Positions 1 through 63,062 of a DNA stretch of 64,000 nt are shown piece by piece. The first letter of the stretch is position 1. The number at the start of each line of letters is the position of its first letter. This DNA comes from Tubulanus polymorphus. Lineage: Eukaryota > Animalia > Nemertea. The stretch covers positions 62,001-126,000 of the forward strand of contig NC_134029.1 in the NCBI RefSeq assembly GCF_964204645.1, in the 5' to 3' direction. The notes beneath the pieces are model-generated. The model had not been told where the DNA came from. It searched no databases and was given only the letters and a program-made list of their open reading frames with translations. The translations under genes were made by a program, and so were the position numbers.

Positions 1-256
1 AACCAGTACCGGGTGAAGCTCCTAAAATGTATGGCAGACATTTTGATAATACGGATATGATAATGAGTATGGTATGTATTGATTAATACGGTGTATTGTG
101 TATGAATACGAGGAATACAGGTTTAATATATCGATATATCATTTTCAGATATCTCGTGAATCGATAGATGCTTTAAAGGATTATTTCCGAGATGAAATGT
201 CTAAAACTGACTGGCAACTGATCATGGAGCTGAAGAAAATATTCCAAATCATGTAG
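1..256 (+). CDS. 3' end of an unidentified protein-coding gene (exons <1-71 and 149-256)
   Basis: Frame from position 3 reads PVPGEAPKMYGRHFDNTDMIMSM to a GTATGT donor at 72. After TTTTCAG, 149-256 continues in phase 0 as ISRESIDALKDYFRDEMSKTDWQLIMELKKIFQIM*. Family not recognised. Confidence 0.7.
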
Positions 257-32070: not shown

Positions 32071-42019
<9,949 letters not shown>

Positions 42020-42377
42020 TAAACATTGTTGAACGCGTTACTAGGCGACTGACTGTATGACGTCATCAATCACGTGTAAGAACTGTAAATAAGAATGAGG
42101 AGTTTTAACTCTACTCAAAATACAGAGTTTTATTGTAAATAGATGCGCACGCATGCAGGTCGGATAAAGGGGTTGGAAGCGCATTAAAGGTGCTAATTTT
42201 ATAGAATGAAAATTTAATTAATTAGATTCTGAATTTAAAGAGATTTAACTGATGAATGATTTAAAGGCTGATATTATAAGCCACTTATAGATGATATATT
42301 TGAACCGAGATTATTATGTAAATTGAATTTTATATGTAGTATATTAATTATCATGAATAAAAGAAAATTCAATGTAT

Positions 42378-44278
42378 ATTGTATTGGCGTATTGTATGAT
42401 GGTGTATTGTATGATGGTGTATTGGTGTATTGTATGATGGTGTATTGGTGTATTGTATGATGGTGTATTGGTGTATTGTATGATGGTGTATTGGTGTATT
42501 GTATGATGGTGTATTGTATGATGGTGTATTGGTGTATTGTATGATGGTGTATTGTATGATGGTGTATTGGTGTATTGTATGATGGTGTATTGGTGTATTG
42601 TATGATGGTGTATTGTATGATGGTGTATTGGTGTATTGTATGATGGTGTATTGGTGTATTGTATGATGGTGTATTGGTGTATTGTATGATGGTGTATTGG
42701 TGTATTGTATGATGGTGTATTGTATGATGGTGTATTGGTGTATTGTATGATGGTGTATTGTATGATGGTGTATTGGTGTATTGTATGATGGTGTATTGGT
42801 GTATTGTATGATGGTGTATTGTATGATGGTGTATTGGTGTATTGTATGATGGTGTATTGGTGTATTGTATGATGGTGTATTGGTGTATTGTATGATGGTG
42901 TATTGTATGATGGTGTATTGGTGTATTGTATGATGGTGTATTGGTGTATTGTATGATGGTGTATTGTATGATGGTGTATTGGTGTATTGTATGATGGTGT
43001 ATTGGTGTATTGTATGATGGTGTATTGGTGTATTGTATGATGGTGTATTGGTGTATTGTATGATGGTGTATTGTATGATGGTGTATTGGTGTATTGTATG
43101 ATGGTGTATTGTATGATGGTGTATTGGTGTATTGTATGATGGTGTATTGGTGTATTGTATGATGGTGTATTGTATGATGGTGTATTGGTGTATTGTATGA
43201 TGGTGTATTGTATGATGGTGTATTGGTGTATTGTATGATGGTGTATTGGTGTATTGTATGATGGTGTATTGTATGATGGTGTATTGGTGTATTGTATGAT
43301 GGTGTATTGTATGATGGTGTATTGGTGTATTGTATGATGGTGTATTGGTGTATTGTATGATGGTGTATTGTATGATGGTGTATTGGTGTATTGTATGATG
43401 GTGTATTGTATGATGGTGTATTGTATGATGGTGTATTGGTGTATTGTATGATGGTGTATTGTATGATGGTGTATTGGTGTATTGTATGATGGTGTATTGG
43501 TGTATTGTATGATGGTGTATTGTATGATGGTGTATTGGTGTATTGTATGATGGTGTATTGGTGTATTGTATGATGGTGTATTGTATGATGGTGTATTGGT
43601 GTATTGTATGATGGTGTATTGTATGATGGTGTATTGGTGTATTGTATGATGGTGTATTGTATGATGGTGTATTGTATGATGGTGTATTGGTGTATTGTAT
43701 GATGGTGTATTGGTGTATTGTATGATGGTGTATTGGTGTATTGTATGATGGTGTATTGTATGATGGTGTATTGGTGTATTGTATGATGGTGTATTGGTGT
43801 ATTGTATGATGGTGTATTGGTGTATTGTATGATGGTGTATTGGTGTATTGTATGATGGTGTATTGTATGATGGTGTATTGGTGTATTGTATGATGGTGTA
43901 TTGTATGATGGTGTATTGGTGTATTGTATGATGGTGTATTGTATGATGGTGTATTGTATGATGGTGTATTGGTGTATTGTATGATGGTGTATTGGTGTAT
44001 TGTATGATGGTGTATTGGTGTATTGTATGATGGTGTATTGGTGTATTGTATGATGGTGTATTGGTGTATTGTATGATGGTGTATTGGTGTATTGTATGAT
44101 GGTGTATTGTATGATGGTGTATTGGTGTATTGTATGATGGTGTATTGGTGTATTGTATGATGGTGTATTGTATGATGGTGTATTGGTGTATTGTATGATG
44201 GTGTATTGGTGTATTGTATGATGGTGTATTGGTGTATTGTATGATGGTGTATTGGTGTATTGTATGATGGTGTATTGG
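42378..44278. repeat. 1.9-kb two-unit satellite (15-bp TGGTGTATTGTATGA with optional 8-bp TGGTGTAT)
   Basis: Near mutation-free, irregular mixture of 15- and 23-bp units between the convergent CYFIP and GALNT 3' ends. Confidence 0.97.
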
Positions 44279-44618
44279 AATAATTCAGTATAACTGTTAG
44301 ACATTGATAAACGGCACTGATTCTAAGGGAACGTGGAGGTGGAGGGGAGGAGGAGGAGGGGAGGAGGAGGAGGAGAGGAGGAGGAGAGGGAGGAGGAGGG
44401 GAGGGAGGAGGAGAGGGAGGGGGAGAGACACGAGCGGGTGAATTTAAGGGTGAACGATGAATTCGATGAACTGGTCGTACATGGATTAATAATAGATTGA
44501 GTCTCATCTCCAGCTATATTCATGAACTAACTCACGTTACTCCACAATAGACGTGATCTAAATACAAACCAGGTCCCCTGATCATCAAATCTGATTACAA
44601 TATCTACACTTACCAAAA

Positions 44619-44946: not shown

Positions 44947-47900
44947 TTATTGATTACCCATTAATTTAGTATAAGTTGAGAATTTCCACAATTGATGATT
45001 TTGTCGATCAGAATTACATTTAGTTAAAAACAACGATTGATCATTCATATAATCTAAACACAGACCACTCTGTACGTGAACTATCCGACCATTCTACAAC
45101 AATAAACAATACAGCAATCAATATAAGTCGATTCTTAGATTATATACAAATTAGGTTCCAGATATATGCAAATAAGATTTCATTTAAGAAGCTACATATT
45201 TGGTCTAGTCGGTAGAGCATAAGGCTTTAAACCCGAGGGTCCGGGGTTCGAGTCCCATACCGATGGTCTACACTTTTTTTTACCTTACTTGCGCAGTTTT
45301 TTATTTAAGCTTGATATCGATTAAAAACTGTTTGCTGAGTTTAAGCTGAATGGCTGATTTTAAAATCCCTTGCCCCCTCCCCCTCCCTCCACAGACGGGT
45401 ATACAGTGATTATTTACCGGTTTATGGAGCCAGGTATCATTGACAATCCGACAGGGATATGATATAAGTCTTTGAATTCCGCCCTGGACGTGTCTGGCAA
45501 CACAACTATCAGCATCAACTTCTAAACGATTCGTCGGCGTTAAACTGAAAAACTAACCATACAAAATAACAGTTAGTGAGCGACCCCTAGTGAGAGGGCC
45601 CCTAAATAGTGCAGCCCCAAAAAGTGGGGCCCTTGTTAGTGCAACCCTAGTTCATAGACTAGTAACACTCCAGTTAGTATGCGAACCCTACTGAGTAACA
45701 CTACAGTTAGTATGCGACCCCTGGTGAGTAACACTACAGTTAGCATGCGACCCCTGGTGAGTAACACCCCAGTTAGTATGCGACCCCTGGTGAGTAACAC
45801 CCCAGTTAGTATGCGACCCCTGGTAACACCCCAGTTAGTATGCGACCCCTGGTGATTAACACCCCAGTTAGTATGCGACCCCTAGTGAGTCCCACCCCAG
45901 TTAGTATGCGACCCCTAGTGAGTAACACCCCAGTTAGTATGCGACCCCTAGTGAGTAACACTACAGTTAGTATGCGACCCCTAGTGAGTCCCACCCCAGT
46001 TAGTATGCGACCCCTAGTGAGTAACACCCCAGTTAGTACGCGACCCCTGGTGAGTAACACCCCAGTTAGTACGCGACCCCTACTGAGTAACACTACAGTA
46101 AGTATGTGACCCCTAGTGAGTAACAACCCAGTTAGTATGCGACCCCTGGTGATTAACACCCCAGTTAGTATGCGACCCCTAGTGAGTAACACTACAGTTA
46201 GTATGCGACCCCTAGTGAGTCCCACCCCAGTTAGTATGCGACCCCTAGTGAGTAACACCACAGTTAGTATGCGACCCCTAGTGAGTAACACTACAGTTAG
46301 TATGCGACCCCTAGTGAGTCCCACCCCAGTTAGTATGCGACCCCTAGTGAGTAACACCCCAGTTAGTACGCGACCCCTGGTGAGTAACACCCCAGTTAGT
46401 ACGCGACCCCTACTGAGTAACACTACAGTTAGTATGTGACCCCTAGTGAGTAACAACCCAGTTAGTATGCGACCCCTGGTGAGTAACACCCCAGTTAGTA
46501 TGCGACCCCTGGTGAGTAACACCCCAGTTAGTACGCGACCCCTACTGAGTAACACTACAGTTAGTATGTGACCCCTACTGAGTAACACTACAGTTAGTAT
46601 GCGACCCCTGGTGAGTAACACCCCAGTTAGTATGCGACCCCTGGTGAGTAACACCCCAGTTAGTACGCGACCCCTACTGAGTAACACTACAGTTAGTATG
46701 CGACCCCTAGTGAGCAACACCCGAGTTAGTATGCGATCCCTGATGAATAACACCCCAGTTAGTATGCGACCCCTGGTGAGTAACACCCCAGTTAGTATGC
46801 GACCCCTGGTGAGTAACACCCCAGTTAGTATGCGACCCCTGGTGAGTAACACCCCAGTTAGTATGCGACCCCTGGTAACACCCCAGTTAGTATGCGACCC
46901 CTGGTGATTAACACCCCAGTTAGTATGCGACCCCTAGTGAGTAACACTACAGTTAGTATGCGACCCCTAGTGAGTAACACCCCAGTTAGTATGCGACCCC
47001 TAGTGAGAGAGCCCGCTAATAATGCGATCCAGTGGGTTGACCCCCCAGTTACTGGTCTCTCTGACTGGGAGACCAGTAACAGTGGGATCCAGTCTGACTG
47101 AGTCTGGAGTGGACTAGTCGATTCTGTTATTACCCTATAATCTCCAAACTTAACACAATATTTACAATGTATTCAAATCATTACTTTATTCATAAATAAA
47201 TAGATATTTTACCTGGTTTCCTCCCTGCCCGTGACAGACCATTAGACTCATATGATCCTGGCGACCTTTCTTATCAACGCAATGATTCGTAAAACCATTT
47301 CGAATCTGAAAATGAAAAGTAAAATGATTGAGATTTGATACCAGTTGTACTATACCAGCTAAACCGCTTATATTTAGCACCAGTCCAGTGTAAGCTGATT
47401 ATGGATGAGGTGGAAAGGGATGAGAGGGAGGAGAGAGGAGAGGAGAGGAGTGAGGATGAGAGGGAGGTGACGGATGAGGGGAGGAGAGGAGGAGAGGAGG
47501 AGGAGGAGGAGGAGGAGAGGGGAGGAGAGGGAGGAGGGAGGCGAGGGAGGAGGGGAGGAGAGGGAGGAGGGAGGTGAAGGAGGAGAGGAAGGAGGTATGC
47601 TTACCTCGCCGTTCGCTTTGTTCTGAAATGAAGGTCGATACATCTCCGGGTAAATATTATCTAAATACCAACTAAAACTTTTACACTTCAATTGTTTTCG
47701 GAGAAGTTTTCTAGCTGTGACGTCACCGAAATTTTGGCCGCGAAGGTGACCCCGTTTTCTGTAGAATATCTCTTTATACTCATCGAGCCAAACCTCGGCG
47801 ATTCTCATACAGTTGCGCAGAAACGTAACGACGTTTCCATCCGGGAACTTATAGGGCTGCGAGTTGCGGAATATATGACCGACGTGTGAACAGGGAACGA

Positions 47901-50748
47901 TCTCTATAGAACCGCCACACATCCAAACCTTGAAAATCAGAAACATTTCACTTTATCGCTCTGCATTCATTCTACAGTTCCACAAACAGCAGCAGCAGCA
48001 ACAGCAGCAGCTACATTTTACCTTGAAAGATAATTCTAAATTCTCTCCACCCCAAATATCCAGTCCTGGATCATACATTCCCAGCTCCAGGAAATAGGAT
48101 TTGTCGATTGCGAACAATCCACCAGCCATTGTTGGGGATCTGTTGATGAAAATGTTTAGAATATATCAATTATGTATATACTGTAACATTTAAACCTCCG
48201 TAACAATCATAATTAAACGGTGACAGTGAGAACCAGTGATCAGTTCAATGGAGGCGAATTTTGTAGTAATTGGATGAATTAATTGACGGTTTGTTGTCAG
48301 AAGCTCGTGACTAAAAGTGGCAACGTATGACGTCTCTGATTTCAAATAACATCGTTAACATCAGTAGATAAACTACTTCTAATAATAATTCGAATTATTT
48401 TTGTTCGATTCTTCATAATCAGCTCTATCGTCTCTATATTCGTGTGCGTCGTTCATTCCACAAATAGTTCATCTTTATTCATAGTGAAAGTGACGTCATA
48501 GCTAAGGACATTCATTACGTTGGTGATTTATACAAATGATGATTTTTAGTTAGTAAATTGAATTAGAAACACAAATCAGGACTCGAGAATAGAGATGACT
48601 TCAGTAATGTAACGACTTATCCAAGTTTGACTGTTTATTTGGCTTATCACGAGCCGAGACGATTATGTGAATATCGTTGACCTGTTTGAATCGAAGGTGG
48701 GTCTCCTGGTAAAGCTAGATTACCCTTTTGGAGAATGATAAGCATTGAGCTGCTGTACTAAGCCTTACACTAAGAAGCCTGCACTTCAGCAGGGATCCGA
48801 AGTATTTTTTTACTATTTCATCAAAAATGCAGTTCTAAGCCGCGCCTCAGAATCAGAGAGACAGGAATTTAATTGTGAACGCATTCCACGCGTTACTAAC
48901 TGGTGACGGATGACGCAATAATCTGCGTGAAATTTCAGTTTATAGTTCCAGCTCACAATATGGCTCCGTTTTATTACCGGGAATAAAAGGATTCGAACCC
49001 GCTGACGAGAGTGGCGGGTTTATAGCTTATTAATGAATAGTTTAATCGAAAATAATTGTTTCATTAGGCTTCGTCAGTCTTCTATTAATTGATCGTCGAC
49101 TGTTATACGCTATCCACGAGGCACACGCTATTTCAGATATAACAACACTGACTAGAAGATAATATCAGTTTCAAATTTAGAAAAGAATGAGACTGGTTGA
49201 ACCATCTACAACCAGACGCCCTATAAACAAAAAAGAATTACGATCCTAAAAGAAATGAAGAAATACACCGTTATATACCGCTTACTGATTACTGTATTTC
49301 ATAGTAAGAAAACATATAACAATTTTTTGGAATTGCGATATCAACCTCGACAAATAATGAAGATTACACATCAGAATAAAAATTCAATCTTTGTATCGCC
49401 TCAATTCCTATTTCAAATATTCGCTGTTAAAGGTCACTGCACACAATGTTGTGTGTTCGCTGTATCCAATATTTACATGTAACAGTTAATTGAATCAATT
49501 AAAGAGAAAATAGTAGGAGTGACGGACTGCGCGTGCGTGGGATTCATTGTAAATATACAAGTGTCAAATAAGTAGATATGCAAATGAATTGCAAATTTAA
49601 ATGATATCCTTGACCTCAGGCAGTAAGATCAGTTCAAGATAAAAAAAAGATATGGGAGGAGTCCGTTACATCGAATACTTCGCTTAAGGAATTTAAAAAA
49701 GACAAGCGCCCGGTATGGGACTCGAACCCAGGACCCTCAGGTTAAAAGCCTGATGCTCTACCGACTGAGCTAACCGGGCTGCTGCTCCATTGTACTAATA
49801 ATCAGAATTTCGAAAAACCTGTCGACTTATGTAAATGAGATGCAAAAAAGATGTGAGGTAACTCACCTGATTGGGTAAGATTTATCGGGTCTGTTTTTGA
49901 GTACATCATGAGGTACATTGCCCCAACTGAACTGTAGAGTCCATTGAAACACACCTCGAGTGTTCTCATCTACAGCACCATAACTACAAAATACAAAACC
50001 TACATCTCTATACCGCGTAAGAATTTACCCCTGGCACGTGAGTCCTTGTGGGCTAGAATGAAACTATTGGGAAGTAAGGAGACCCTGGGAAGTGAGGTAG
50101 AGTGGTTATTCAACTATTAAGATATCGACGAAATCGCTATAAAAAATATCGGAAAACTTCACAGGAAATTATGTTTAAACAATTCTTCTGTAAGCTGAGT
50201 GTTTGCTGAATATTGATTTAATTTATGTAAACTATCAATAGATTTATCACAGAAAACTTACTCGTTGAGGGGATCTGGAGGAGTCCACGGGTAGTCTATA
50301 GGGAGTCTGGGGTATCTGGAGGAGTCCACAGGTAGTCTATAGGGAGTCTGGGGTGTCTGGAGGAGTCCACAGGTAGTCTATAGGGAGTCTGGGGTGTCTG
50401 GAGGAGTCCACAGGTAGTCTATAGGGAGTCTGGGGTGTCTGGAGGAGTCCAAAGGTAGTCTATAGGGAGTCTGGGGTATCTGGAGGAGTCTTAAGGAGTA
50501 GGGAGTCTGAATATGTGTGGGGAGTCCGATAGGAAAGGATTCTATCATACAATAATAAAAGAAGTTGCACTTTGATGGCAAATATCGGTCAGTAATATAC
50601 ATAGGAACTATAATGATAAAAGTTTAATATCAGATCATTTTAACGTTAGGTTTAGAATCAAAGCCTCCAGAATATTTCGGTAGATAATGTTGTAACTATT
50701 GGTCAGTGTGACACGTATAAACAGTGTTGATGTCAAACAGGTAAAAGT

Positions 50749-50843
<95 letters not shown>

Positions 50844-53800
50844 TCTAATCTCAGATCTGATATATATACATTCTCAAGGGGGTATTTAGTTGTTTACGGG
50901 CCACGGATTTTCTATAGAAACTCATTATAACATGAATAACGCGACAGACTAGAGCAGCGACGCTGGACGGATATCGAGGCTAGGGTTCAGTTTAGCCACT
51001 TTCCCTAACAGCTAATAACATACAAAATTGAAGGTTGGTGATTCCTTCAGTGGCGCCCCCTAGCTGGTAGATAGACGGATGATTACTCCATAGGCGCCCC
51101 CTACTGGTACTCACTCGAACGTTTCCATGTTTATATTATCGATAATAGGTGCCACTACGTGTTTCCGGTTCTGTCGTATCCGGTCTAACATCGGTTCTAA
51201 CCAACCAGTAGTGACCTCTATATGTGAGTCTAAGAACGTCAATGCCTCTCCTTTCGCAGATTGTACACCGATCATCCGGGCTCTTATTAACCCTTCTCGT
51301 TTTGGCAGACGTATTATCCGCACTTTAGGGAATCTTTCCACATATCTATCGAGCCGTTCTTTCAGAAAATCTGCAAAATGAATATGAGATTAATCATTTT
51401 GTTCGATGACACCAGGGGACAGCACAAGAAACCGATAATCGTTCTGAAATACACAATTATAACCGTTATTTTTGAATTCAAGAGTGAGATATATTCAGTT
51501 TGTTTTTTTTTTTTTAATTTGTTTTGCTTTAAATTGGTTGGGATTGTAGACAACCCAGCAGATCCTCGGCGTATACACTATATACGTGACGTCAGTTAGT
51601 CCACGAGACGATGTGTGTCCATTCAGTAATAAACTCTTAACAGAGAGACTGAGATAGATAGAGACAGCGAGGCTCTCATCTTACAACCGAGGAGAGGAGA
51701 TGGTAGAAGATATTTTATCCCATCATCCACGCGAACAGTCGAGTTATGAATCTGAACTGATCTATATAAATCCAACTATTGACAGCATTAATGTCACTGA
51801 ATTACAAACAGACAGGGAACGACGATATATAACAATTCATATCTCAATATCATCATTTCAATCAGTCTCTGTGTTGTACCGGGTATGGAAAGGTTACAGT
51901 TCCGCCTGATGATGGCAGTCTTTAACCGAAACATTGCTCGAAATAGAAACCAGAACTTTTCATATGTGAATCTGTTGTGGAATATTTCTCTTGTTATTCA
52001 CTGATATTGTGTGTATGTTCTCGATTTCTTTAAAGGTTACTCTGGTAAGCGATGATAATAAGAGTGAAACTCGATCGATTTATCGTAATTACGACGAACC
52101 CAATCACTATACGAACTTACACCTATCCAAATAGTAAATCGAATTGAGAATCAAAAATAACAGTGATTTCAGTGATTTGACGACTTTGACTATTGTAGCT
52201 ACACACGTACCAGACTGACTGAAATCGTCAATTAGTAAAACTTCCTCGACCAACTCTGGTGGAGATCTGTTGATTATACTGTGTATTGTACGTATTAAAG
52301 CTGACCAAGATTCCTCACAGAAACAAACTATTATACTAGTCTTAGGAAGCTTATTGTACGGGTATTTCTTCGTCTTACAACTGAAAAAAAAACGAGAAAA
52401 CATTGGCATGATATGAAATTTCTTTAGTTTAGAACTTCATTTCAAAGGAAAGATGGATCAGTTTAGGACATGAAAAAGGGCATCTGAGCATAGAAAAAAA
52501 ATACAAACGCCCGGTATGGGACTCGAACCCAGGACCCTCAGGTTAAAAGCCTGATGCTCTACCGACTGAGCTAACCGGGCTCACGAATGTGACAGTGGAT
52601 CAGTGAGAAGATTTTTTGGATGACGACGACGAGAACGAATTTTTTTGAATATTTCAATGTTTTCATGTATGTGATTGGAATTCAACGACTTAAAATTCAG
52701 CATTCCTCGTGGTCGATGAATCATTGCTGTTAGGGTTCCTCCGTGGGTTTTTTTTTTTGCTAAAACACGCGCTTTTAATATCTAAAAAGAATTCTGTACA
52801 TTTTGTACGATTTAAACGACTAAACTAGTTTTCGATCAGTATTTGTGCAATTACTGTGTTAATTGTGTTATTTGTGAGAGGGAGAGGGAGAGGGGGAGGG
52901 AGAGGGAGAGGGAGAGGGAGAGGGAGAGGGAGAGGGAGAGGGAGAGGGAGAGGGAGAGGGAGAGGGAGAGGGAGAGGGAGAGGGAGAGGGAGAGGGAGAG
53001 GGAGAGGGAGAGGGAGAGGGAGAGGGAGAGGGAGAGGGAGAGGGAGAGGGAGAGGGAGAGGGAGAGGGAGAGGGAGAGGGAGAGGGAGAGGGAGAGGGAG
53101 AGGGAGAGGGAGAGGGAGAGGGAGAGGGAGAGGGAGAGCCTGGAGAGCCTGGAGAGCCTGGAGAGCCTGGAGAGCCTGGAGAGGGAGAGGGAGAGCCTGG
53201 AGAGCCTGGAGAGGGAGAGCCTGGAGAGGGAGAGCCTGGAGAGGGAGAGCCTGGAGAGGGAGAGGGAGAGCCTGGAGAGCCTGGAGAGGGAGAGGGAGAG
53301 CCTGGAGAGCCTGGAGAGGGAGAGGGAGAGCCTGGAGAGGGAGAGGGAGAGCCTGGAGAGGGAGAGGGATGGAGGGAGAGGGAGAGGGATGGAGGGAGAG
53401 GGAGAGGGATGGAGGGAGAGGGATGGAGGGAGAGGAGGGGGTATACCATGCGTAGAATCCATGGTATAACAGTGATGATTAAAGCTGACTGGTGATTGGA
53501 TGAATCGAACAGACTGTCATCAACCAATCACAGTTCAGTAATGATAAAATGATCCGCATCAACTCGAGAGAATGAATCAGTTTTAGTAAGAAGAGATAGA
53601 GAGAGAGAGCAGACAGATTGAACTAGGAGTAAATATTAAACATGGTTTCGAGTTTAATAACAGCGGCAGTGTTAGCGATGTTACTGGTTGGAGGTATAGT
53701 TATAATCGAAGGTTCACCAGCAACAAAACGACAATTAATACATGAACAATTTCCTGATACTTTCTCACCGGCTCAAGGTAAGAGAAAAAGCGCAATACAG

Positions 53801-56800
53801 AATCGAGTTCCACTTGTGAGTTAACTGTCAACTCAGAATCCAGTTCCACAGTTGTGAGTTAGAGTTAACACTGAACTCAGGATCCAGTTCCACAGTTGTG
53901 AGTTGGAGTTTACTGTGAACTCAGGATCCAGTTTCACAGTTGTGAGTTAGATTTAACTGTGAACTCAGGATCTAGTTCCACAGTTGTGAGTTAGAGTTAA
54001 CTCTGAACTCAGGATCTAGTTCCACAGTTGTGAGTTAGAGTTAACTGTGAACTCAGGATCTAGTTCCAAAGTTGTGAGTTAGAGTTAACTGTGAACTCAG
54101 GATCCAGTTTCACAGTTCTTGGAGTAATCAGACTGATTACTCCAATCACGATAAGTTTACTCAGAACTGTGGTATTTGATGCAGCTTCTGGCTGTTGAAT
54201 ACACATTGTGTATCATCTCCTAAAACTCTGTTCTAAATGTCTATGTTTTCATCTTAGATTAACTTTTTTGTTCTAAGATATCAAAAAAAAACTTTTGAAT
54301 CTGTTGCTTTACGTGTATAGGCTGTTCTTTAGACACAATTCTACCCCAATTTTAAGCATTAGGTTCGTAGTGAAAAGTGGCCAGTTTCTAACCCCCCCTT
54401 CTCCCCCTCCTCCTCCTCTCCTCCTCCTCCTCCTCCTCCTCCCCTCCTCCACCCCTCCCTCTCTTCTCCACATAGATACGTGCGTTCTTCATAAACGATT
54501 CTGTCCTCAATAGATATAGAACTGACCATCCACAAACGCTTTATGCTCAGCCTCAGCTTTTTTCTGGTAAATGTATCCAGTTTTTGTAGATGGGTAGTTT
54601 TTCTAATTGTCTATTGATAGCGATGTTGATGGTTCTCTATTCGTCCATCTATATATCGTGTTACAATGAATACTAGTATATGTTGTATTATAGAAATGAA
54701 TACTAGTATATGTTGTATTATAGAAATGAATACTAGTATATGTTGTATTATAGAAAGTCGATGAAGTAATGAGAGATTTAGGTAGGTGAGGTTTTCCAGG
54801 AGATCGAGAAAAACGAAACGAACATAAACAGAGAATTGAATCACTATTTCAGCGAACAGTTTGACGTATATCAATAATTATCTATTAGATATTTATGCGT
54901 CATATAAAAGTCTTTTATTCCAGACACAAATCCGAATCGATCAATTACTGAATGAAATAGAATTAATAGATTTCTCAGAGTTCAGCGACCCGTTGAACCA
55001 GCGCCTCAGGCCGCAGCGACCCGTTGAACCAGCGCCTCAGGCCGGTTTTACAGACATTGAGAACTATAAGACGGAAGAGTCAGTGCTTTTACCTGGGAAT
55101 TAAATCAATTGATATTAGATTGTTTACTTTCCTCCGGGTAAACCGAACCCTTTTACATTGTGATACAATGTGATACAATCAAAATATAAACAGCAGAAAT
55201 TATTATCGAAATTCTGTTATTTCAATATTGGTAAATTATTTGTAACAAATTACGAGATAAATATTTCTAAACCCTAAACCTGACACACCCTGACAGACGA
55301 CCACGTGACACACCCTGACAGAGGACCGCACCTCATTAATCTATCGGACTAATTCATATTTATCCTAAAGATTTCAGACTGTTCGAGACTCGAATGAAAC
55401 TGTGTTTAACCTGACTTCACAGTTAACAAGCAGAGAATGTTTATCTACTATTCAATTATTTATCAGTTTCACGTTTTTTCCGATATTTTCTCTAAGACGG
55501 GATGGGACTGACTCACAGCGATACGAGGGCACACTGTGGAACTGTGGAACCGCGGAACCGTTGAACTGGGGAACTGGGGAACTGTGGAACCGCAGAACCG
55601 TGGAACTGGGGAACTGCGGAACCACGGAACCGCGGAACTGCGGAACCGCAAAACTGGGGAACTGTGGAACTGCAGAACTGGGGAACTGCGGAACCGCGGA
55701 ACTGCGGAACCGCAAAACTGGGGAACTGTGGAACCGGGGAACTGCGGAACTGGGGAACCGCGGAACTGCGGAACTGCCGAACTGGGGAACTGTGGAACTG
55801 GATCCAGAACTGTGGAACTGGAAAGCTGCTTTTTGTCTTCAGTCTGAATCCATCTCATGTAGAATCAATAATATTCATATTCTTGATATGATATGATTTG
55901 TTTTCTTAAGAAGTTAATTTCTGTACGAACAGCAGATAAAGAAGAGTCAGTATTGAGCGACTGAGAGGATTTATTACTGCCAACTCTTAACTCATTTATC
56001 ATATATAATCTAATTCCGTGACTGACAGAAAATTCACCCGTTTGAAAAATCGTCTATAAAAACAGTTTTTTATGTAAGGAATAATGACGTGTTTTATTAC
56101 GTTAGATCCAACATAGAAGACTCATTAGTGACGTCACGATTGTAACTTCCGCCTGTTGGTTATCAATCATGTAATAGTTAATTAAAAACTGACTTTTACG
56201 AGTGTGATGAAGCTGTCTGTCTCCCTCTCCCTCCCCCTCACTCCCTCTCACTCACCCACCCCCTCGTTTAAAGAAGTGGTAATTAATACCGCTAGGGGGC
56301 GTTAGTAGGATTGATTAAAAGTGGAAATACGTCAATAAAAGATGATTTGATATTGTTTTTAAAACAATGGATTTATGTAGCATATGTTTTCAGACAAGCT
56401 GAGAGTGTGTCCAATCGATATTATAAATCACCACTCATATCTCCTATCTGTACAACACTGTCATGTGTGACAGTATAGGACTGTGTCCGATACACAATTA
56501 CCTATTCACAGATAGGAGAGGAGGGAGAGGGGGGAAAGCGAGGGAGGGGGAGAGTGAGGGAGAGGGGAGGGGGATGAGAGAGGGAAGGGGAGAGTGAGTG
56601 AGGGAGGGAGGAAGGAGTGAGGAGGAAGGGAAGGAGAAAGAGGGAGGGAGAGGGGAGTGAGAGTGCTGTTGTAAATACTGATATTGACTATCATCTATTC
56701 ATTCTGTTTTCTCGCTTGTTTTGTTAATTATCAGCAGCAATTTTATTTCCATTTCCCTCGAGATGATTGCTGAATATTATCACATTAAAAACCATAAATC

Positions 56801-58283
56801 TTGCCTTTCTTTATTCGCTTAATTAGAATTTACGACATTTTTGAAATGCGTTATATAGAAAAAAATTGTACCCAATTGCTTTTAGTAGAAACCTCTTGAG
56901 AGGATTACTGTTAAGGGAAAGAGAGGGTGACAGTCTAGAGGGAGGCTACCTCTCTAGGGGGAGGCCACCTCTCTACAGGGAGTCTAACTCTCTTAGGGGG
57001 AGAGAGGTTGACAGTTTCTCCACAGGGACTGAATTCTATAAGGAGGGATGTGGTTAAGATAATAAGTGGAGGTAGATGTTGTTTTATTCTGTAACTGATG
57101 AAAGACAGCGCGGATCAGATCAGAGATTTATACAATAATCATAAATATCTAAATGGTTTCGGTGGTTTTTATTAACGAGATCTGATTATATATAATTACT
57201 CATAATAATCCACACTAACAGAACAATCTCCTTACTCTACAGACAACTAGTATCCACCAGTCATCCACATGTATGAGACAATCCACAGTTATCCACACTA
57301 ACAGAACAATCTCCTTACTCTACAGACAACTAGTATCCACCAGTTATCCACATGTATGAGACAATCCACAGTTATCCACATGTATGAGACAATCCACAGT
57401 TATCCACATGTATGAGACAATCCACAGTTATCCACATGTATGAGACAATCCACAGTTATCCACATGTATGAGACAATCCACAGTTATCCACACTAACAGA
57501 ACAATCTCCTTACTCTACAGACAACTAGTATCCACCAGTTATCCACATGTATGAGACAATCCACAGTTATCCACATGCAAGAGGCAGCTCGAATTCCGAT
57601 TCTGATCTTATACTATCTGTGTGACGAATACGTTTATGGGATTTTAGTCCCCGGGGCTAAAATAAACTCAATTTGATTGTAGATGATTGTATTCCTGGGA
57701 TCCATTCATCCCAGACACATTGCCACCCCAGCCTCTTATAATGATGATACTAGAATTAGTTTTAGGTAAAAAGATATAAATTTCTCAATCTTTTTTTTCG
57801 ATTTAGAGTATGATATAGTTGGGTGTAGTCCGTGTGAAATCCCTCGACTAAAATCTACTTTCACGATTCTGTGAAGCGTAATATTTCATAATAACATTCT
57901 GATGACAAAATTCACTGAGTGCAAGGGTAGAAATAATCGTCGAATCATCAGTTTATCATCAGTCTTATAGAGCTCCCGCGCAGTAGGCCTACAGTCAATA
58001 ACAGCTCAATGCGACCAGAACGCGTGTGGAACTAAGCCAACAAAAAAAAACGATTTAAACCGATTTGGAAATCTTCAAAACAACATTCATGAATAAAATG
58101 ATCTTTTGCCCCGGGATTTAGTAGAGTTTGCGGTAGCGTGTCAATGGACTTTAACTCAGACACTCGTGTTTGACTCCAGTTTAGGGTGCTTCCGAGAATA
58201 TGACGTTCTTAAGATAGTGAAAGGAGACACGATATAGAAATATTAGTCACAGTTTGAGGATTAGATAAATTCCAAAGAGCAGC

Positions 58284-58330
<47 letters not shown>

Positions 58331-61300
58331 AGCGATTCTAGCAGAAGATTCGAAATAGTTTACGTTCTGAAATATTTGGTTGCGGCTCTGAATATGATTT
58401 CCAGATGATGTATAGTCAGACACAGTGGACTGGTAACCAGGAGTGGCTATCACTGGAGGAAATATCGACACGGAATTATCACAATTTCATATGCAATAAT
58501 TATACATTCAGACAAATATGTTCGCTCGAAAAGAAAAGATTTCAAATTTACAAGATTCGAAAAGTTTAGATCTCAAATAAGGCAGAACATTACGAAAGTG
58601 CAAAACAGGAGGATTTCTAGTATTCCACTATATTGCTTTCAAAATCCTTGACTAAACGAAGACCCGCGCACTTCACTTTTAAGAGTGGATACATACTGTA
58701 AACATTGATTTAGAATATTCCAGAGCAGTGTGTACCCTTGTAGAGCGAGGAGACTCACTCTGTAAGTCTGAGAAGTTGAGTTTAAACCCGCTACTACGAA
58801 GTTAGTTCACGAATTTACCGCCGACGTTATATATAGAGGCAGCACTTAACGGTTGTAATATGATACAGATCGTAATTCCTACTGTGGCATGCGGGTAATC
58901 GAGATATCTCTTTCTAAGTCAAATTTCATACGTTATTCAACACGATGCAATTTAAAACGTATATTTAAAGCAGCAATCAAACTTTATTTAAGAAGAAACC
59001 GATTTTGAAATGAGGTTTAAGCCACTTTTTGTTGAGCTATTTCGTATTTAAGTATGGCGGTAAAGCGGTAGCGTAGTGATCACTCACATGCCACAGTTAG
59101 TATTCAATGTCAATTCAGTAAATTCAACAGTCTATGCTCGCGCCGGTTCGATATTCATGTCATAAGATCATACCTAGTTTTATTCTACCCAAACCCCTTC
59201 TATCATAGACTATTTTTTCGAAAGTAAATCTTATTTCTGAACTTGCTCTATCTATCTTATTATATTTTCTATGCACATTCCTCTTCATACAAAAAGTTCA
59301 TCTTTTTTCGTGTCTACACGAGAATTTTTAAATTCATTTCAATAAACAGCGTATATAGAAATCGATAATCAGAAATCAGACCCGCATTTATCAACGTTTT
59401 GGACCCGGTTTTAAACGAGTACGCCTGTACTTTGAAAAACCTATATTCATAGTTTTACGAGTGAAGAATTTCTTTTTTTTTAGTAGTAACTGAAAACAGT
59501 GAGAAAGAATTAGCTCCCCCTCCCCCTCCCCTCTCCCCTCTCCCCTCTCCCCTCTCCCCTCTCCCCTCTCCCCCTCCCCTCCCCTTTTCACCACGCCTGA
59601 CTGGTCACCACACTGACCAGACACACCAACAAACACGGTCAAATACTACTGGATTATGGTCTAGTGGTTAGCACGTCTGACTGGGATGTGGGAGGCGGCA
59701 GGATCGAGGCCCGCTAGGGTTAGGGTTAGTGCATCAGAGTTTTGTCAAAATGTCGGCAAAATGTCATCTTTTTTAATATATAGAGAGATAAAAGGGATTA
59801 GTCTTGGCGGCAGGCACCAGTGTCTCATGGTTTGTTGTCTTTTACAGACGCGCACGCCCCAAAAATCATCCTCGTGAATTCGAGTGTGCTGGAGTATATT
59901 AATGAATGAATTAATGAATGAATGAATGAATAAATGATTGAACATAAATAAGACAGGTTTTAGGCTCGGGTCCAGTTCCAGAACTCTAAAATCAGATCAT
60001 TTTCAATGTTTTAACTGAGAACTGTCTGAATCCGGCTCCTAAAGTTAGAGCTTTTCAGATTGTTTGATCTCTTGAGTCCTGAGACTAATCAAAACTCTCT
60101 TGGGAACTGGATGGGTCCCGGTTGCAAGTTCGCACTATATCACATGCGTTGTTAAGATTATTAATATATTCCTGAGAAGTCAAACGACTATGAGATATAA
60201 ATATAATACACGATATCGGAGTAATTCATACATCTCACATCGCTATGACATAACCCTCGATCATATTCTATAAATAATTGTGTCCTTGACAACAATAAAA
60301 CTCTAATCTCAGGTTTAACCAGATGAATTTCTCGTTTCAGCGTCTCATTTCCAAGACGATTCGCTATTAGCTGATACTGATGATATATTCGGAACGTCAC
60401 CCGGATTATCGGTGTACGATGAAAATATGTGGGGAAATTATCTAAAACCGGTCAGAGAAATAGAGAAACGTAGTGAGTATCAATAAAACCCCACATGCCA
60501 CAGATCACTTCAACGTCCCGTATAATATGATGTAAACTGTTATTTACAGGTAGGAAGAGGGGCGACGTGAACGCGCTGTTGGCTAAATTGATTTCGATGT
60601 CAGAAAATAGCCCTAGAGGGCGCGTCACCCGCTTCCGGTTTGGTACTGGGAAATAGATGATTAGTTCAGTGAAATGATGATAGATGGCGCTAGTAGTTGA
60701 TTCCACGGGATTTGATTGGTCGATCCAGTTACACAGTAGATGTCATTTAGTCCAGGTCCACTAATTGGAACCAATGGGAGTTTGGACTAGTCCTAAATCG
60801 AAGCAGTCTCACGGGCCAACCGACCCTCGCCCCACACATCACGACCTGTTTTTTCTAGAATGATCAGAACACAATAAATTCACAAAGTTTATTCTCTTCT
60901 CACTGAAGTAAAAACCAGGAATGAGAAAAACACCTGAAATTCCGCTGTAGTTATTTATATGAAAATACACCGAATTATATTTATTTTACTCTGATAATTG
61001 TTTGTGTATGATTTGTTTGTAATCCTGGATTGAGAAAAGGTTCCACAGTCGTGGGGCAGTGTGGAGAACAGACAGATGCTGCTCAGGTACAGCACAGGTG
61101 CAGCACAGGTACACAGGTACAGCACAGGTACAGCTCAGGTACAGCTCAGGTACAGCTCAGGTACAGCACAGGTACAGCACAGGTACAGCACAGGTACAGC
61201 CCAGGTACACAGGCGCAGCTGTAATACAGCTGTTCTGGTTTTAGTTTGTTATCATTTTGAATGATGTCGTGAATTATCACAGATAGATAAACAGAATTGC

Positions 61301-63062
61301 GACATCTGTATCCAGTTGCACAAGGGTCGATATCGTGATTAAACCCCATTCGGCTAGGTACGTGACGTAGCGAGTGCAAGCAAACTGAGGGACACGTGGT
61401 CCCGTCGGGAAATCGAGGGATTGGAAAGTTTTTTCTAGTCAGGGATCGAAAAACTAGAAAACTACTAAATAATACTACATGTATTTCTCTGAGCAAATTA
61501 TAAGATCTCTGAATGAAATAAAGATGGCGCTGATACTTACACGTCATGTCTGACGTCACGCAGGGATCTCTCGACGGATATCATATCACTAACGTATAAA
61601 TTAAAACGAGCCTCTTTCCAACCTTTATTTATGAGAGATTTAACTTCATCAGATTGTTTATCCTTATCAATACGAACCCCTCGACCATTCATACCCGGTG
61701 CTGTCTCATCACGTGGAAAGGTCACCACCTCATAATTATGAATCTGAAACGCAATAATTTGTTTATTTTGTAACAAATGTAGCGATGTGGACCATGTATC
61801 CCACTAGATACCAGTTATCCCGCTAGATGGCGAGCCAATCATTATGATAAAAATCTACCAACGACTAGATTTTGAGACTTAAATAAATCGTGGAAATTAT
61901 GGGTAGATTTCATCCTGGAGTCGTTGTCCTAATGCACACTGTTGCCACCTGTTGGATCCTAGCATGCCACAGTCGAATGGCCGGAGTCCCCCGTTAGTTT
62001 ACATATTGTTAACAGTTCTAAAAGTATTAAATCATTATCACATAAATGAATAGTAATAGTTATAGTATGATATATCGGGTGGGTAATCTGATATATCGGG
62101 TGGGTAAAGTGAAACAGATGTTCGATATATTCTGAGATTAGCAGTTATAACTATTCTTCAGTCTACAGCCTCCAGACTGAAGTGAGGGGCGTCCAGATGG
62201 TCTCGACACTGTCGAGAGAGAACGGCTCCAGATGGTACAACTACAGCACACATACACACGACTCCCCAATCAGAACGATCCCATTGTTTCTAGCATTTAC
62301 ATTGATTAACCTACAATTTACGTGATTTTAGGATAAAGGTCTCGCGCAGAAGGGCGCGAAATAGTTTTAAGAAAAACTAATGATAACTCGTGCGAACGAT
62401 TTTCTACCAAATATGGAAAATGTTGGCAAAGAAAGAGACGAAACCTTAGGTGATATCAGAGAATCATCCACGAGAGATTACCACGTCCATCGGATGTCTG
62501 GCGGGTCCAGACCTGGTGAATTATTGGAGATTAGTCAATGTTATTGTTACATGGACAGCGGGGCTAGGGTTTACAACGAGTAGTGAGATAGTGACAGATG
62601 AAGGCAGAATTCTAGCACCAGCATTTCACCGAAAATGATTAATTGAAATATTACTTGTTCATAAAATGGCACAATGTTGAGTTTAACATCTTTATCCGGT
62701 TCAACTTTATCCGGTTCAACTTTAACTGGAGCAACTGTAACTTTCTCATCTCCATCTCGGCTGCTGCTGATGTTGTGAACATTTTTCGGTATAAATTTCA
62801 GAGCTGCGTTACTGTCAATATTAATAATATTATCGCCCACACGGGGGCGCTGTTTAGGCGAACTATTGTTTTTCAATAATCTCTCGTTTATATTAAAAAT
62901 CCAGAAATCTTTTTTACTGCTTGAAATCATTTTCTGGTCCATTAAAATCAACAAAGCGATATCCGCTAAAAGCCAGAACAATGACGTCATAGTGACAATC
63001 GTGATTACTTTAGTGCGAGACATTGATCCAAACATCTTTCCTGAATTATTCGTTTGAGCCAT
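44947..63062 (-). CDS. GALNT: Polypeptide N-acetylgalactosaminyltransferase (ppGalNAc-T), 10 coding exons (63062-62655, 61743-61541, 52380-52211, 51370-51115, 49983-49867, 48139-48022, 47928-47605, ~47305-47213, 45552-45418, 45093-44947)
   Basis: Type II anchor. Catalytic-domain motifs [59 protein letters not shown] (DxH), [40 protein letters not shown]. Ricin-type lectin repeats ([13 protein letters not shown]). Paralogue number cannot be assigned. Confidence 0.95.
45194..45266 (+). pseudogene. tRNA-Lys(UUU)-derived pseudogene (anticodon now TTA)
   Basis: tggtctagtcggtagagcataaggctttaaacccgagggtccggggttcgagtcccataccg aligns to the intact copies, but the acceptor and anticodon stems are broken. 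Confidence 0.8.
45660..47007. repeat. 33-bp minisatellite (~40 copies) in a GALNT intron
   Basis: cagttagtatgcgacccct(g/a)gtgagtaacaccc repeated. Confidence 0.97.
49707..49779 (-). tRNA. tRNA-Lys(UUU)
   Basis: GCCCGGTTAGCTCAGTCGGTAGAGCATCAGGCTTTTAACCTGAGGGTCCTGGGTTCGAGTCCCATACCGGGCG: 73-nt cloverleaf, A/B boxes, downstream T6 terminator. Confidence 0.9.
50270..50490. repeat. 41-bp tandem repeat (~5 copies)
   Basis: ctggaggagtccacaggtagtctatagggagtctggggtgt repeated. Confidence 0.92.
50747..50842. repeat. (CAG)n microsatellite, intronic
   Basis: Directly visible. Confidence 0.97.
52508..52580 (-). tRNA. tRNA-Lys(UUU), identical to 49707-49779
   Basis: Same 73-nt sequence; poly-T terminator downstream; flanks unrelated. 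Confidence 0.9.
52876..53440. repeat. (GAGAGG)n purine microsatellite with interspersed GAGAGCCTG units
   Basis: Directly visible. Confidence 0.97.
53642..60656 (+). CDS. Nested antisense prohormone/neuropeptide-precursor-like gene (exons 53642-53777, 60341-60472, 60550-60656; 124 aa)
   Basis: [45 protein letters not shown]|[44 protein letters not shown]|[35 protein letters not shown]. Splice sites AAG|GTAAGA, CTCGTTTCAG|, A|GTGAGT and TTTACAG| are all phase 1. Confidence 0.65.
53830..54116. repeat. 44-bp tandem repeat (~6 copies)
   Basis: aactcaggatccagttccacagttgtgagttagagttaactgtg repeated. Confidence 0.93.
54514..55103 (+). CDS. Possible alternative 3' exons of the nested gene (54514-54566, 54800-54865, 54924-55103)
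   Basis: Phases 1/0/0 join exon 53642-53777 without a stop: [18 protein letters not shown]|[22 protein letters not shown]|[20 protein letters not shown]...LLPGN*. Donors are weaker (GTAAAT, GTATAT). Confidence 0.4.
55534..55822. repeat. Degenerate 8-bp repeat array (GGAACTGN/GGAACCGC)
   Basis: Directly visible; shares the actgtggaactggatc core with the arrays at 44619 and 53830. Confidence 0.9.
57208..57577. repeat. Compound minisatellite (28-bp unit plus ~55-bp variant)
   Basis: gttatccacatgtatgagacaatccaca alternates with gttatccacactaacagaacaatctccttactctacagacaactagtatccacca. Confidence 0.9.
58882..59096. mobile_element. MITE-like element related to 717-937
   Basis: ctgtggcatg ... catgccacag inverted termini; similar length and the same aattcct 5' flank. 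Confidence 0.5.
59590..59740 (+). mobile_element. Third, diverged copy of the tRNA-like/TTAGGG repeat
   Basis: cctgactggtcaccacactgaccagacaca ... atggtctagtggttagc ... gcaggatcgaggcccgctagggttagggtta. Confidence 0.75.
61084..61212. repeat. 11-bp minisatellite
   Basis: caggtacagc(a/t) repeated. Confidence 0.9.

Follow-up and report, generated by a model that had tools for sequence, protein, structure and literature searches.

Orphan genes that look like prohormones are common in invertebrate genomes. How can such a gene be placed, and what would its product do? The gene discussed here was at first likened to the QRFP (26RFa) system, whose peptides carry a C-terminal RF-amide, are made as a single peptide of 25-26 residues and share the conserved positions L4, A8, K18 and G20 (PMC4062910). 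Receptors of the QRFP type occur in nemerteans and other lophotrochozoans without a known ligand (PMC8557429, PMC4062910). For nemerteans, a survey of 13 transcriptomes collected about 1,300 proneuropeptides, with at least 59 precursors from Tubulanus polymorphus (PMC8557429). The gene in question, LOC141905717, lies on the + strand of a 64,000-nucleotide stretch of T. polymorphus DNA (contig NC_134029.1; this whole stretch is referred to as the window, and positions are those of the window unless another contig is given). What appears to be a real, single-copy gene of three exons encodes a protein of 124 residues, and the layout of that protein suggests that the product is secreted, cleaved, amidated and used for signalling. 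We tentatively favour, at close to even chances, a lineage-restricted secreted precursor that yields a 29-residue Thr-amidated signalling peptide (...RFRFGT-amide). At present the gene is an annotated, uncharacterized orphan.

The gene model

The first-pass annotation of the window proposed a hidden gene of three + strand exons, all joined in phase 1 into a 124-residue open reading frame (ORF) and nested antisense in intron 2 of a GALNT gene. The coordinates, splice sites and translations of this model all match (Table 1), and an identical protein is public: RefSeq XP_074650807.1 (P0001 in the collections searched), 'uncharacterized protein LOC141905717' of T. polymorphus, a palaeonemertean. 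The three exons sum to 375 nt, that is, 124 codons and a stop, with the codons GCG (A) and AGT (S) split across introns 1 and 2, respectively. Both donors and both acceptors are near consensus, and the open stretch of the exon 2 frame is confined to 60319-60486. Around the start codon, position -3 is A and position +4 is G, and an in-frame TAA stands at 53630, twelve bases 5' of the ATG. Phase-1 introns near the leader region are typical of genes for secreted proteins.

Exon 3 alone, run against 1.84 billion representative proteins, retrieved XP_074650807.1 with 100% identity over residues 91-124. The three exon translations equal its residues 1-45, 47-89 and 91-124, with the A and S of the split codons at the junctions (residues 46 and 90). 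Since the public protein carries all the exon translations in register, it is the spliced product residue for residue; the spliced model was searched exon by exon and the whole-protein analyses used the public protein. The identical model in the public annotation means that the gene is annotated, with no function assigned there, and the description as hidden holds with respect to the ORF track only. Is the gene transcribed? To our knowledge, the NCBI pipeline keeps models without protein homology only when transcript or RNA-sequencing alignments back them; RNA support for XP_074650807.1 would be expected under that rule. The promoter-like stretch upstream of the gene comprises an inverted CCAAT (ATTGG, 53494-53498), a CCAAT at 53524, a TATA-like ATAAAA at 53544-53549 and, about 33 nt beyond the latter, an initiator-like TCAGTT at 53577-53582, all of them resemblances to consensus only.

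Anatomy and proposed processing of the precursor

The prohormone-like layout seen by the first-pass annotation is present in the public protein: a hydrophobic leader, three multibasic sites (at residues 29, 88 and 91), an acidic spacer and a terminal G-K. The precursor has no cysteine. The hydrophobic run of the leader is 18 residues long and small residues precede S25. The predicted cleavage falls most likely after G24, with G18 as an alternative; the leader of the DH44/ELH precursor of the same species is similar and ends ...AIVEG/KP. How would the peptide be made from such a precursor? The leader would be removed in the endoplasmic reticulum, most likely at the G24 site. Cleavage by prohormone convertases would follow at KR30, KR89 and RKR93. 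The basic residues, the final Lys among them, would be taken off by a carboxypeptidase, and peptidylglycine alpha-amidating monooxygenase would use Gly123 to amidate the C-terminus at Thr122. Two products are predicted: a cationic peptide of 29 residues, which would have a short helix at its N-terminus, a basic tail and the end ...RFRFGT-amide, and an acidic, Gln-initial spacer of 57 residues. The peptide would most likely be an intercellular signal, a neuropeptide or a hormone acting on a receptor.

The amide falls on Thr as encoded, just as had been read from the DNA, the end being R-F-G-T-G-K-stop. The predicted charge of the peptide rises to +4 if it is amidated and the free N-terminus is counted, and the calculated monoisotopic mass of the 29-residue C-terminal amide is 3190.715. 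A single-sequence AlphaFold model has helices at residues 3-23, 73-89 and 96-108 and is otherwise disordered, at low confidence (pLDDT, the predicted local distance difference test, 52). The Atlas model is likewise mostly disordered (pLDDT 0.53) and shares the helices at 3-23 and 96-108. A mostly disordered fold with few helices, as modelled, would be expected of a prohormone. An N-terminal amphipathic helix had also been proposed for the peptide. A helix is indeed predicted there (96-108, with low confidence), but its amphipathicity is only moderate, the hydrophobic moment in an 11-residue window being 0.24-0.41 across residues 94-108.

Table 1. Features of the nested gene, its predicted product and the neighbouring GALNT exons (positions in the window; a slash marks an exon-intron or cleavage boundary; CDS, coding sequence)
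Feature	Position	Strand	Details
Promoter-like stretch	53494-53582	+	consensus resemblances only
Exon 1 (CDS part)	53642-53777, 136 nt	+	leader, SPATKR, start of Gln-initial segment; donor CAAG/GTAAGA; phase 1
Intron 1	53778-60340, 6563 nt	+	phase 1; many tandem repeats
Exon 2	60341-60472, 132 nt	+	acceptor tttctcgtttcag/, donor GTA/GTGAGT; acidic spacer ending ...REIE-KR; phase 1 to phase 1
Intron 2	60473-60549, 77 nt	+	phase 1; GTGAGT...TTACAG
Exon 3 (CDS part)	60550-60656, 107 nt	+	acceptor ctgttatttacag/; (S)RKR, predicted peptide, G-K, stop TAG 60654-60656
AATAAA polyadenylation signal	60873-60878	+	217 nt 3' of the stop; a T-rich stretch comes next
Predicted signal peptide, residues 1-24	53642-53713	+	hydrophobic run L5-I22, ...IIEG/SP; Kyte-Doolittle; low-confidence AlphaFold helix 3-23
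SPATKR, residues 25-30	53714-53731	+	first dibasic site, KR 29-30
Gln-initial acidic spacer, residues 31-87 (57 residues)	exons 1-2	+	net charge -9
KR-S-RKR, residues 88-93	KR 88-89 at 60466-60471	+	KR 88-89 and RKR 91-93 directly 5' of the peptide
Predicted 29-residue mature peptide, residues 94-122	60561-60647	+	net charge +3; ending ...RFRFGT
Gly123 (predicted amide donor), Lys124 (predicted to be removed by carboxypeptidase), TAG	60648-60656	+	translation
GALNT coding exon 3 (start of GT-A domain)	within ORF 52107-52409	-	Pfam Glycos_transf_2, E 8.6e-06
GALNT coding exon 2	within ORF 61537-61776	-	placed by position between the membrane-anchor and GT-A exons; no Pfam match
GALNT N-terminal membrane-anchor exon	within ORF 62571-63062	-	ORF list

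Relatives in protein and genome collections

Does the gene have relatives? Beyond the public protein itself, the exhaustive search of the 1.84 billion representative proteins found no homologue of exon 3; this search used exon 3 only, a 34-residue query that detects only fairly close relatives, and the collections searched contained no other nemertean genomes. The sole other match, a bacterial low-complexity repeat protein (P0002), was dismissed as chance. In a word search of the protein collections the public protein finds only itself and exon 2 finds none, the 90% cluster of the protein is a singleton, and an exact look-up of encoding contigs returned none. Pfam, run on the three exons and the whole protein, gave nothing but a sub-threshold DUF808 match on the leader. 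In the 268-Mb T. polymorphus assembly the exon DNA is unique and single copy, and protein and DNA searches of this genome gave neither a paralogue nor a repeat copy. A repeat-derived exon was ruled out on this ground, the exon DNA having no repeat copies in its own genome.

Eleven short motifs of the protein were also tried in the supplements of the nemertean survey; those specific to the protein occur in none of its files, and no entry there resembles the precursor (PMC8557429). GTGK and FRFG occur in these supplements only in unrelated families (FSE, allatostatin A, prohormone 3 and AKH), and FGTG occurs once, in the precursor of elevenin (L11). The family appears to be restricted to this lineage.

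Comparison with known hormone precursors

In the Atlas language-model search the neighbours of the protein are nearly all peptide-hormone precursors: DH31 (0.93 and 0.92), NPFF (0.90), PDH, UTS2B, CCK, 26RFa and osteocrin. In the calibration of this search a score of 0.9 is attained by 4-10% of shuffled proteins, and the top family is marked there as a probable error, so these neighbours are a lead at the level of the class and not of family membership. The likeness to DH31/calcitonin precursors lies in the size, about 105-125 residues, and in the presence of one peptide of about 30 residues near the C-terminus. The motif P-A-T-K-(K)-R soon after the leader is also common to the precursor and to T. 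polymorphus DH31 (APAATKKR), and is too short to mean much. In contrast, the T. polymorphus DH31 gene ends ...QGPGRKRR, and neither a GP-G-basic end nor the DH31 core is present in our protein. The gene structures differ too: the mature DH31 peptide is split by an intron over two exons, whereas here the peptide is contained in a single exon and the intron falls within KR-S-RKR. BLASTP of the T. polymorphus DH31 exons against the protein gave no alignment. Sequence (the lack of an alignment and of a GP-G-basic end) and gene structure together rule out a DH31/calcitonin paralogue.

The DH31 gene used for this comparison was located in the species' own genome with a 38-residue DH31 peptide from the published supplement. 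It lies at C11:2808806-2811871, with the match at 1501-1566 and the second half in the ORF 1785-1901 of this locus. In its first half the genomic peptide matches the published transcript peptide at 91% identity; its second half is ...LALQAATDWQGPGRKRR, where the published one has ...LMALQAANSYDSPGRKRR. This DH31-type gene, differing as it does from the published peptide, could be a paralogue or reflect an alternative exon.

Which known precursors share the unusual end? In phoronid PDF/cerebrin the last peptide also runs into G-K-stop (...IGK-stop), and in vertebrate CRH/urocortin precursors the last peptide likewise goes straight into G-K-stop. With both groups the protein shares, by prediction, the order of signal peptide, long spacer, dibasic site, single helical peptide, Gly-Lys and stop. 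PDF/cerebrin peptides, however, have 17-18 residues and a ...(L/Y)NLPD... core, which is absent here, and the protein has no match to Pfam Pigment_DH. PDF/cerebrin and DH44/ELH were both ruled out, inspection revealing no sequence similarity to the listed peptides. Bivalve AKH precursors carry the amidation site ...WGT-G-K-R, which also predicts a Thr-amide; given this G-T-G-K site, a Thr-amide would be an ordinary product. The AKH peptide, on the other hand, is a pyroglutamate peptide of 8-10 residues placed directly after the signal peptide, unlike the 29-residue peptide at the C-terminus of our precursor.

The first-pass annotation compared the end of the peptide with QRFP/26RFa, and this resemblance did not survive closer comparison. 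What the two have in common is one long single-copy peptide (here following RKR93) that ends a small precursor, with an N-terminal part predicted to be helical and F-R-F-G near its end. On these features, together with a 26RFa cluster at Atlas rank 20 (score 0.88; scores below 0.9 are a lead only) and the ligand-less receptors mentioned above, one may propose a highly divergent protostome QRFP/26RFa orthologue, which would serve as ligand for the QRFP-type orphan receptors of lophotrochozoans. We consider this very improbable. The RF is not followed by Gly and a basic residue as in the R-F-G-basic end of QRFP, so an RF-amide is not the predicted end; the amide would sit on Thr and not on Phe, in a peptide of 29 residues and not 25-26. 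Counting F120 as position 25 puts L, L, G and V at the four conserved QRFP positions, of which only Leu4 agrees; counting T122 as position 25 puts A, S, V and R there, and none agrees. The Pfam model PF11109 (RFamide_26RFa), run on the protein up to E 10 and also across the genome, matched neither; this is a weak test, as the model is built from chordates. In the literature we found no later identification of a lophotrochozoan QRFP ligand. The broader suggestion that the 29-residue Thr-amide is the first ligand of an orphan lophotrochozoan receptor (QRFP-type, kisspeptin-type or an orphan class-B 'PDF-like' one), too divergent to be placed by sequence, is a long shot in our estimate.

Signalling peptide, young gene, defence peptide or artefact?

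What speaks against a secreted precursor of a signalling peptide? The hydrophobic run, 18 residues long, may be that of a membrane anchor instead of a cleaved leader, and both structure models are of low confidence (pLDDT ~52). No orthologue or paralogue in which the peptide or the cleavage sites might be seen to be conserved was found anywhere in the collections, and the protein collections gave neither a copy nor a fragment derived from transcripts. The proneuropeptide list of the nemertean survey lacks the gene, though T. polymorphus was included (PMC8557429), and the Atlas scores are, as described, a lead only. Of the shuffles of residues 25-124, 24% have at least three multibasic sites and 1.2% a terminal G-[KR]; with the site count being ordinary and the G-[KR] end rare, it is the G-K end and the overall order that carry the signal, and not the number of sites. 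Several of these observations fit a gene that is real but young and lineage-specific, with a coincidental prohormone look, whose product would be a small secreted or membrane-anchored, largely disordered protein that yields no bioactive peptide, or which has little function. In favour of such a gene, none of the searches gave a relative or a paralogue, the curated nemertean set lacks it, the count of multibasic sites is ordinary, the hydrophobic run is long and the structure confidence is low. It also sits in another gene's intron amid tandem repeats, and introns of other genes amid repeats are a setting where new genes often arise. Yet the exon DNA is unique and does not come from repeats, hormone precursors make up nearly all of the closest feature clusters, and a young gene would have to bring together by coincidence a leader, an acidic spacer, a basic Cys-free C-terminal peptide and a terminal G-K that chance gives at the rate stated. 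We regard the young gene as unlikely.

Could the peptide instead serve in host defence? An antimicrobial or toxin precursor, laid out like the amphibian skin antimicrobial precursors and with a product secreted from epidermal or proboscis glands, would account for a cationic peptide (+3, or +4 when amidated and with a free N-terminus) with a predicted N-terminal helix and for an acidic propiece (-9) that would neutralise it. Mucus and proboscis of nemerteans contain secreted peptide toxins (PMC6410017). Over the helix, though, the hydrophobic moment (0.24-0.41) is lower than we would expect of a lytic helix, and the peptide has no Cys. The nemertean peptide toxins that we know of are cysteine-rich. 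Fast-evolving defence genes are often without detectable relatives, which would fit the searches, but defence peptides usually form gene clusters, whereas this gene is single copy, and antimicrobial and toxin families are missing from the nearest Atlas clusters. A role in defence is in our judgement distinctly unlikely. As for a prediction artefact, a non-functional set of splice-like sites and open frames brought together by chance and picked by both the first-pass annotation and the gene predictor, the exon frames are short, at 40% G+C an open frame of 35-45 codons is no rarity, and transcript evidence was not seen directly. The public annotation nevertheless has the identical model independently, the donors and acceptors are close to consensus, the start codon has a good context (A at -3, G at +4) behind an upstream in-frame stop, an AATAAA lies downstream and the product has a coherent secretory layout; we think an artefact highly unlikely.

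It seems reasonable, then, to ask what a signalling peptide from this precursor would mean. If the peptide is made and does signal, it would enlarge by one the neuropeptide set of a phylum that was surveyed in depth without finding it, and would offer one more candidate for the ligand-less spiralian receptors. It would also be an example of a lineage-restricted signalling-peptide gene within another gene's intron. Should it prove to be the ligand of an orphan receptor, it would provide a palaeonemertean entry point for deorphanizing that receptor system.

The host gene and its repeats

The small gene is nested antisense in an intron of about 9 kb between coding exons 2 and 3 of a GALNT-type glycosyltransferase gene, the host being on the - strand. 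This placement, too, agrees with the first-pass annotation, on the evidence of Glycos_transf_2 matches and a GALNT signature on the - strand. In addition to the match in coding exon 3, a second Glycos_transf_2 match lies at 51111-51341 on the - strand, and the signature WGGEN... is found in - strand ORFs at 47374-48129. A perfect palindrome resembling a cyclic-AMP response element, TGACGTCA, is located at 61552-61559, at the edge of the ORF in which coding exon 2 of GALNT lies.

The host intron contains many tandem repeats. A GA-rich microsatellite of 560 bp (52876-53435; GAGAGG and variants, about 84 copies) ends some 60 bp short of the nested gene's first CCAAT-like element. Within intron 1 of the nested gene, a 44-bp tandem repeat at 53818-54117 (6.8 copies, 91% matches) begins 41 nt past the exon-1 donor. 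Another tandem array, inside the GALNT gene at 45636-47101, has long repeat ORFs on both strands. The array at 42274-44507, of about 2 kb, has an extreme asymmetry between the strands (GC skew of 0.875 in 42001-44000) and repeat ORFs of 676-712 residues on the - strand; it is satellite-like and not a gene.

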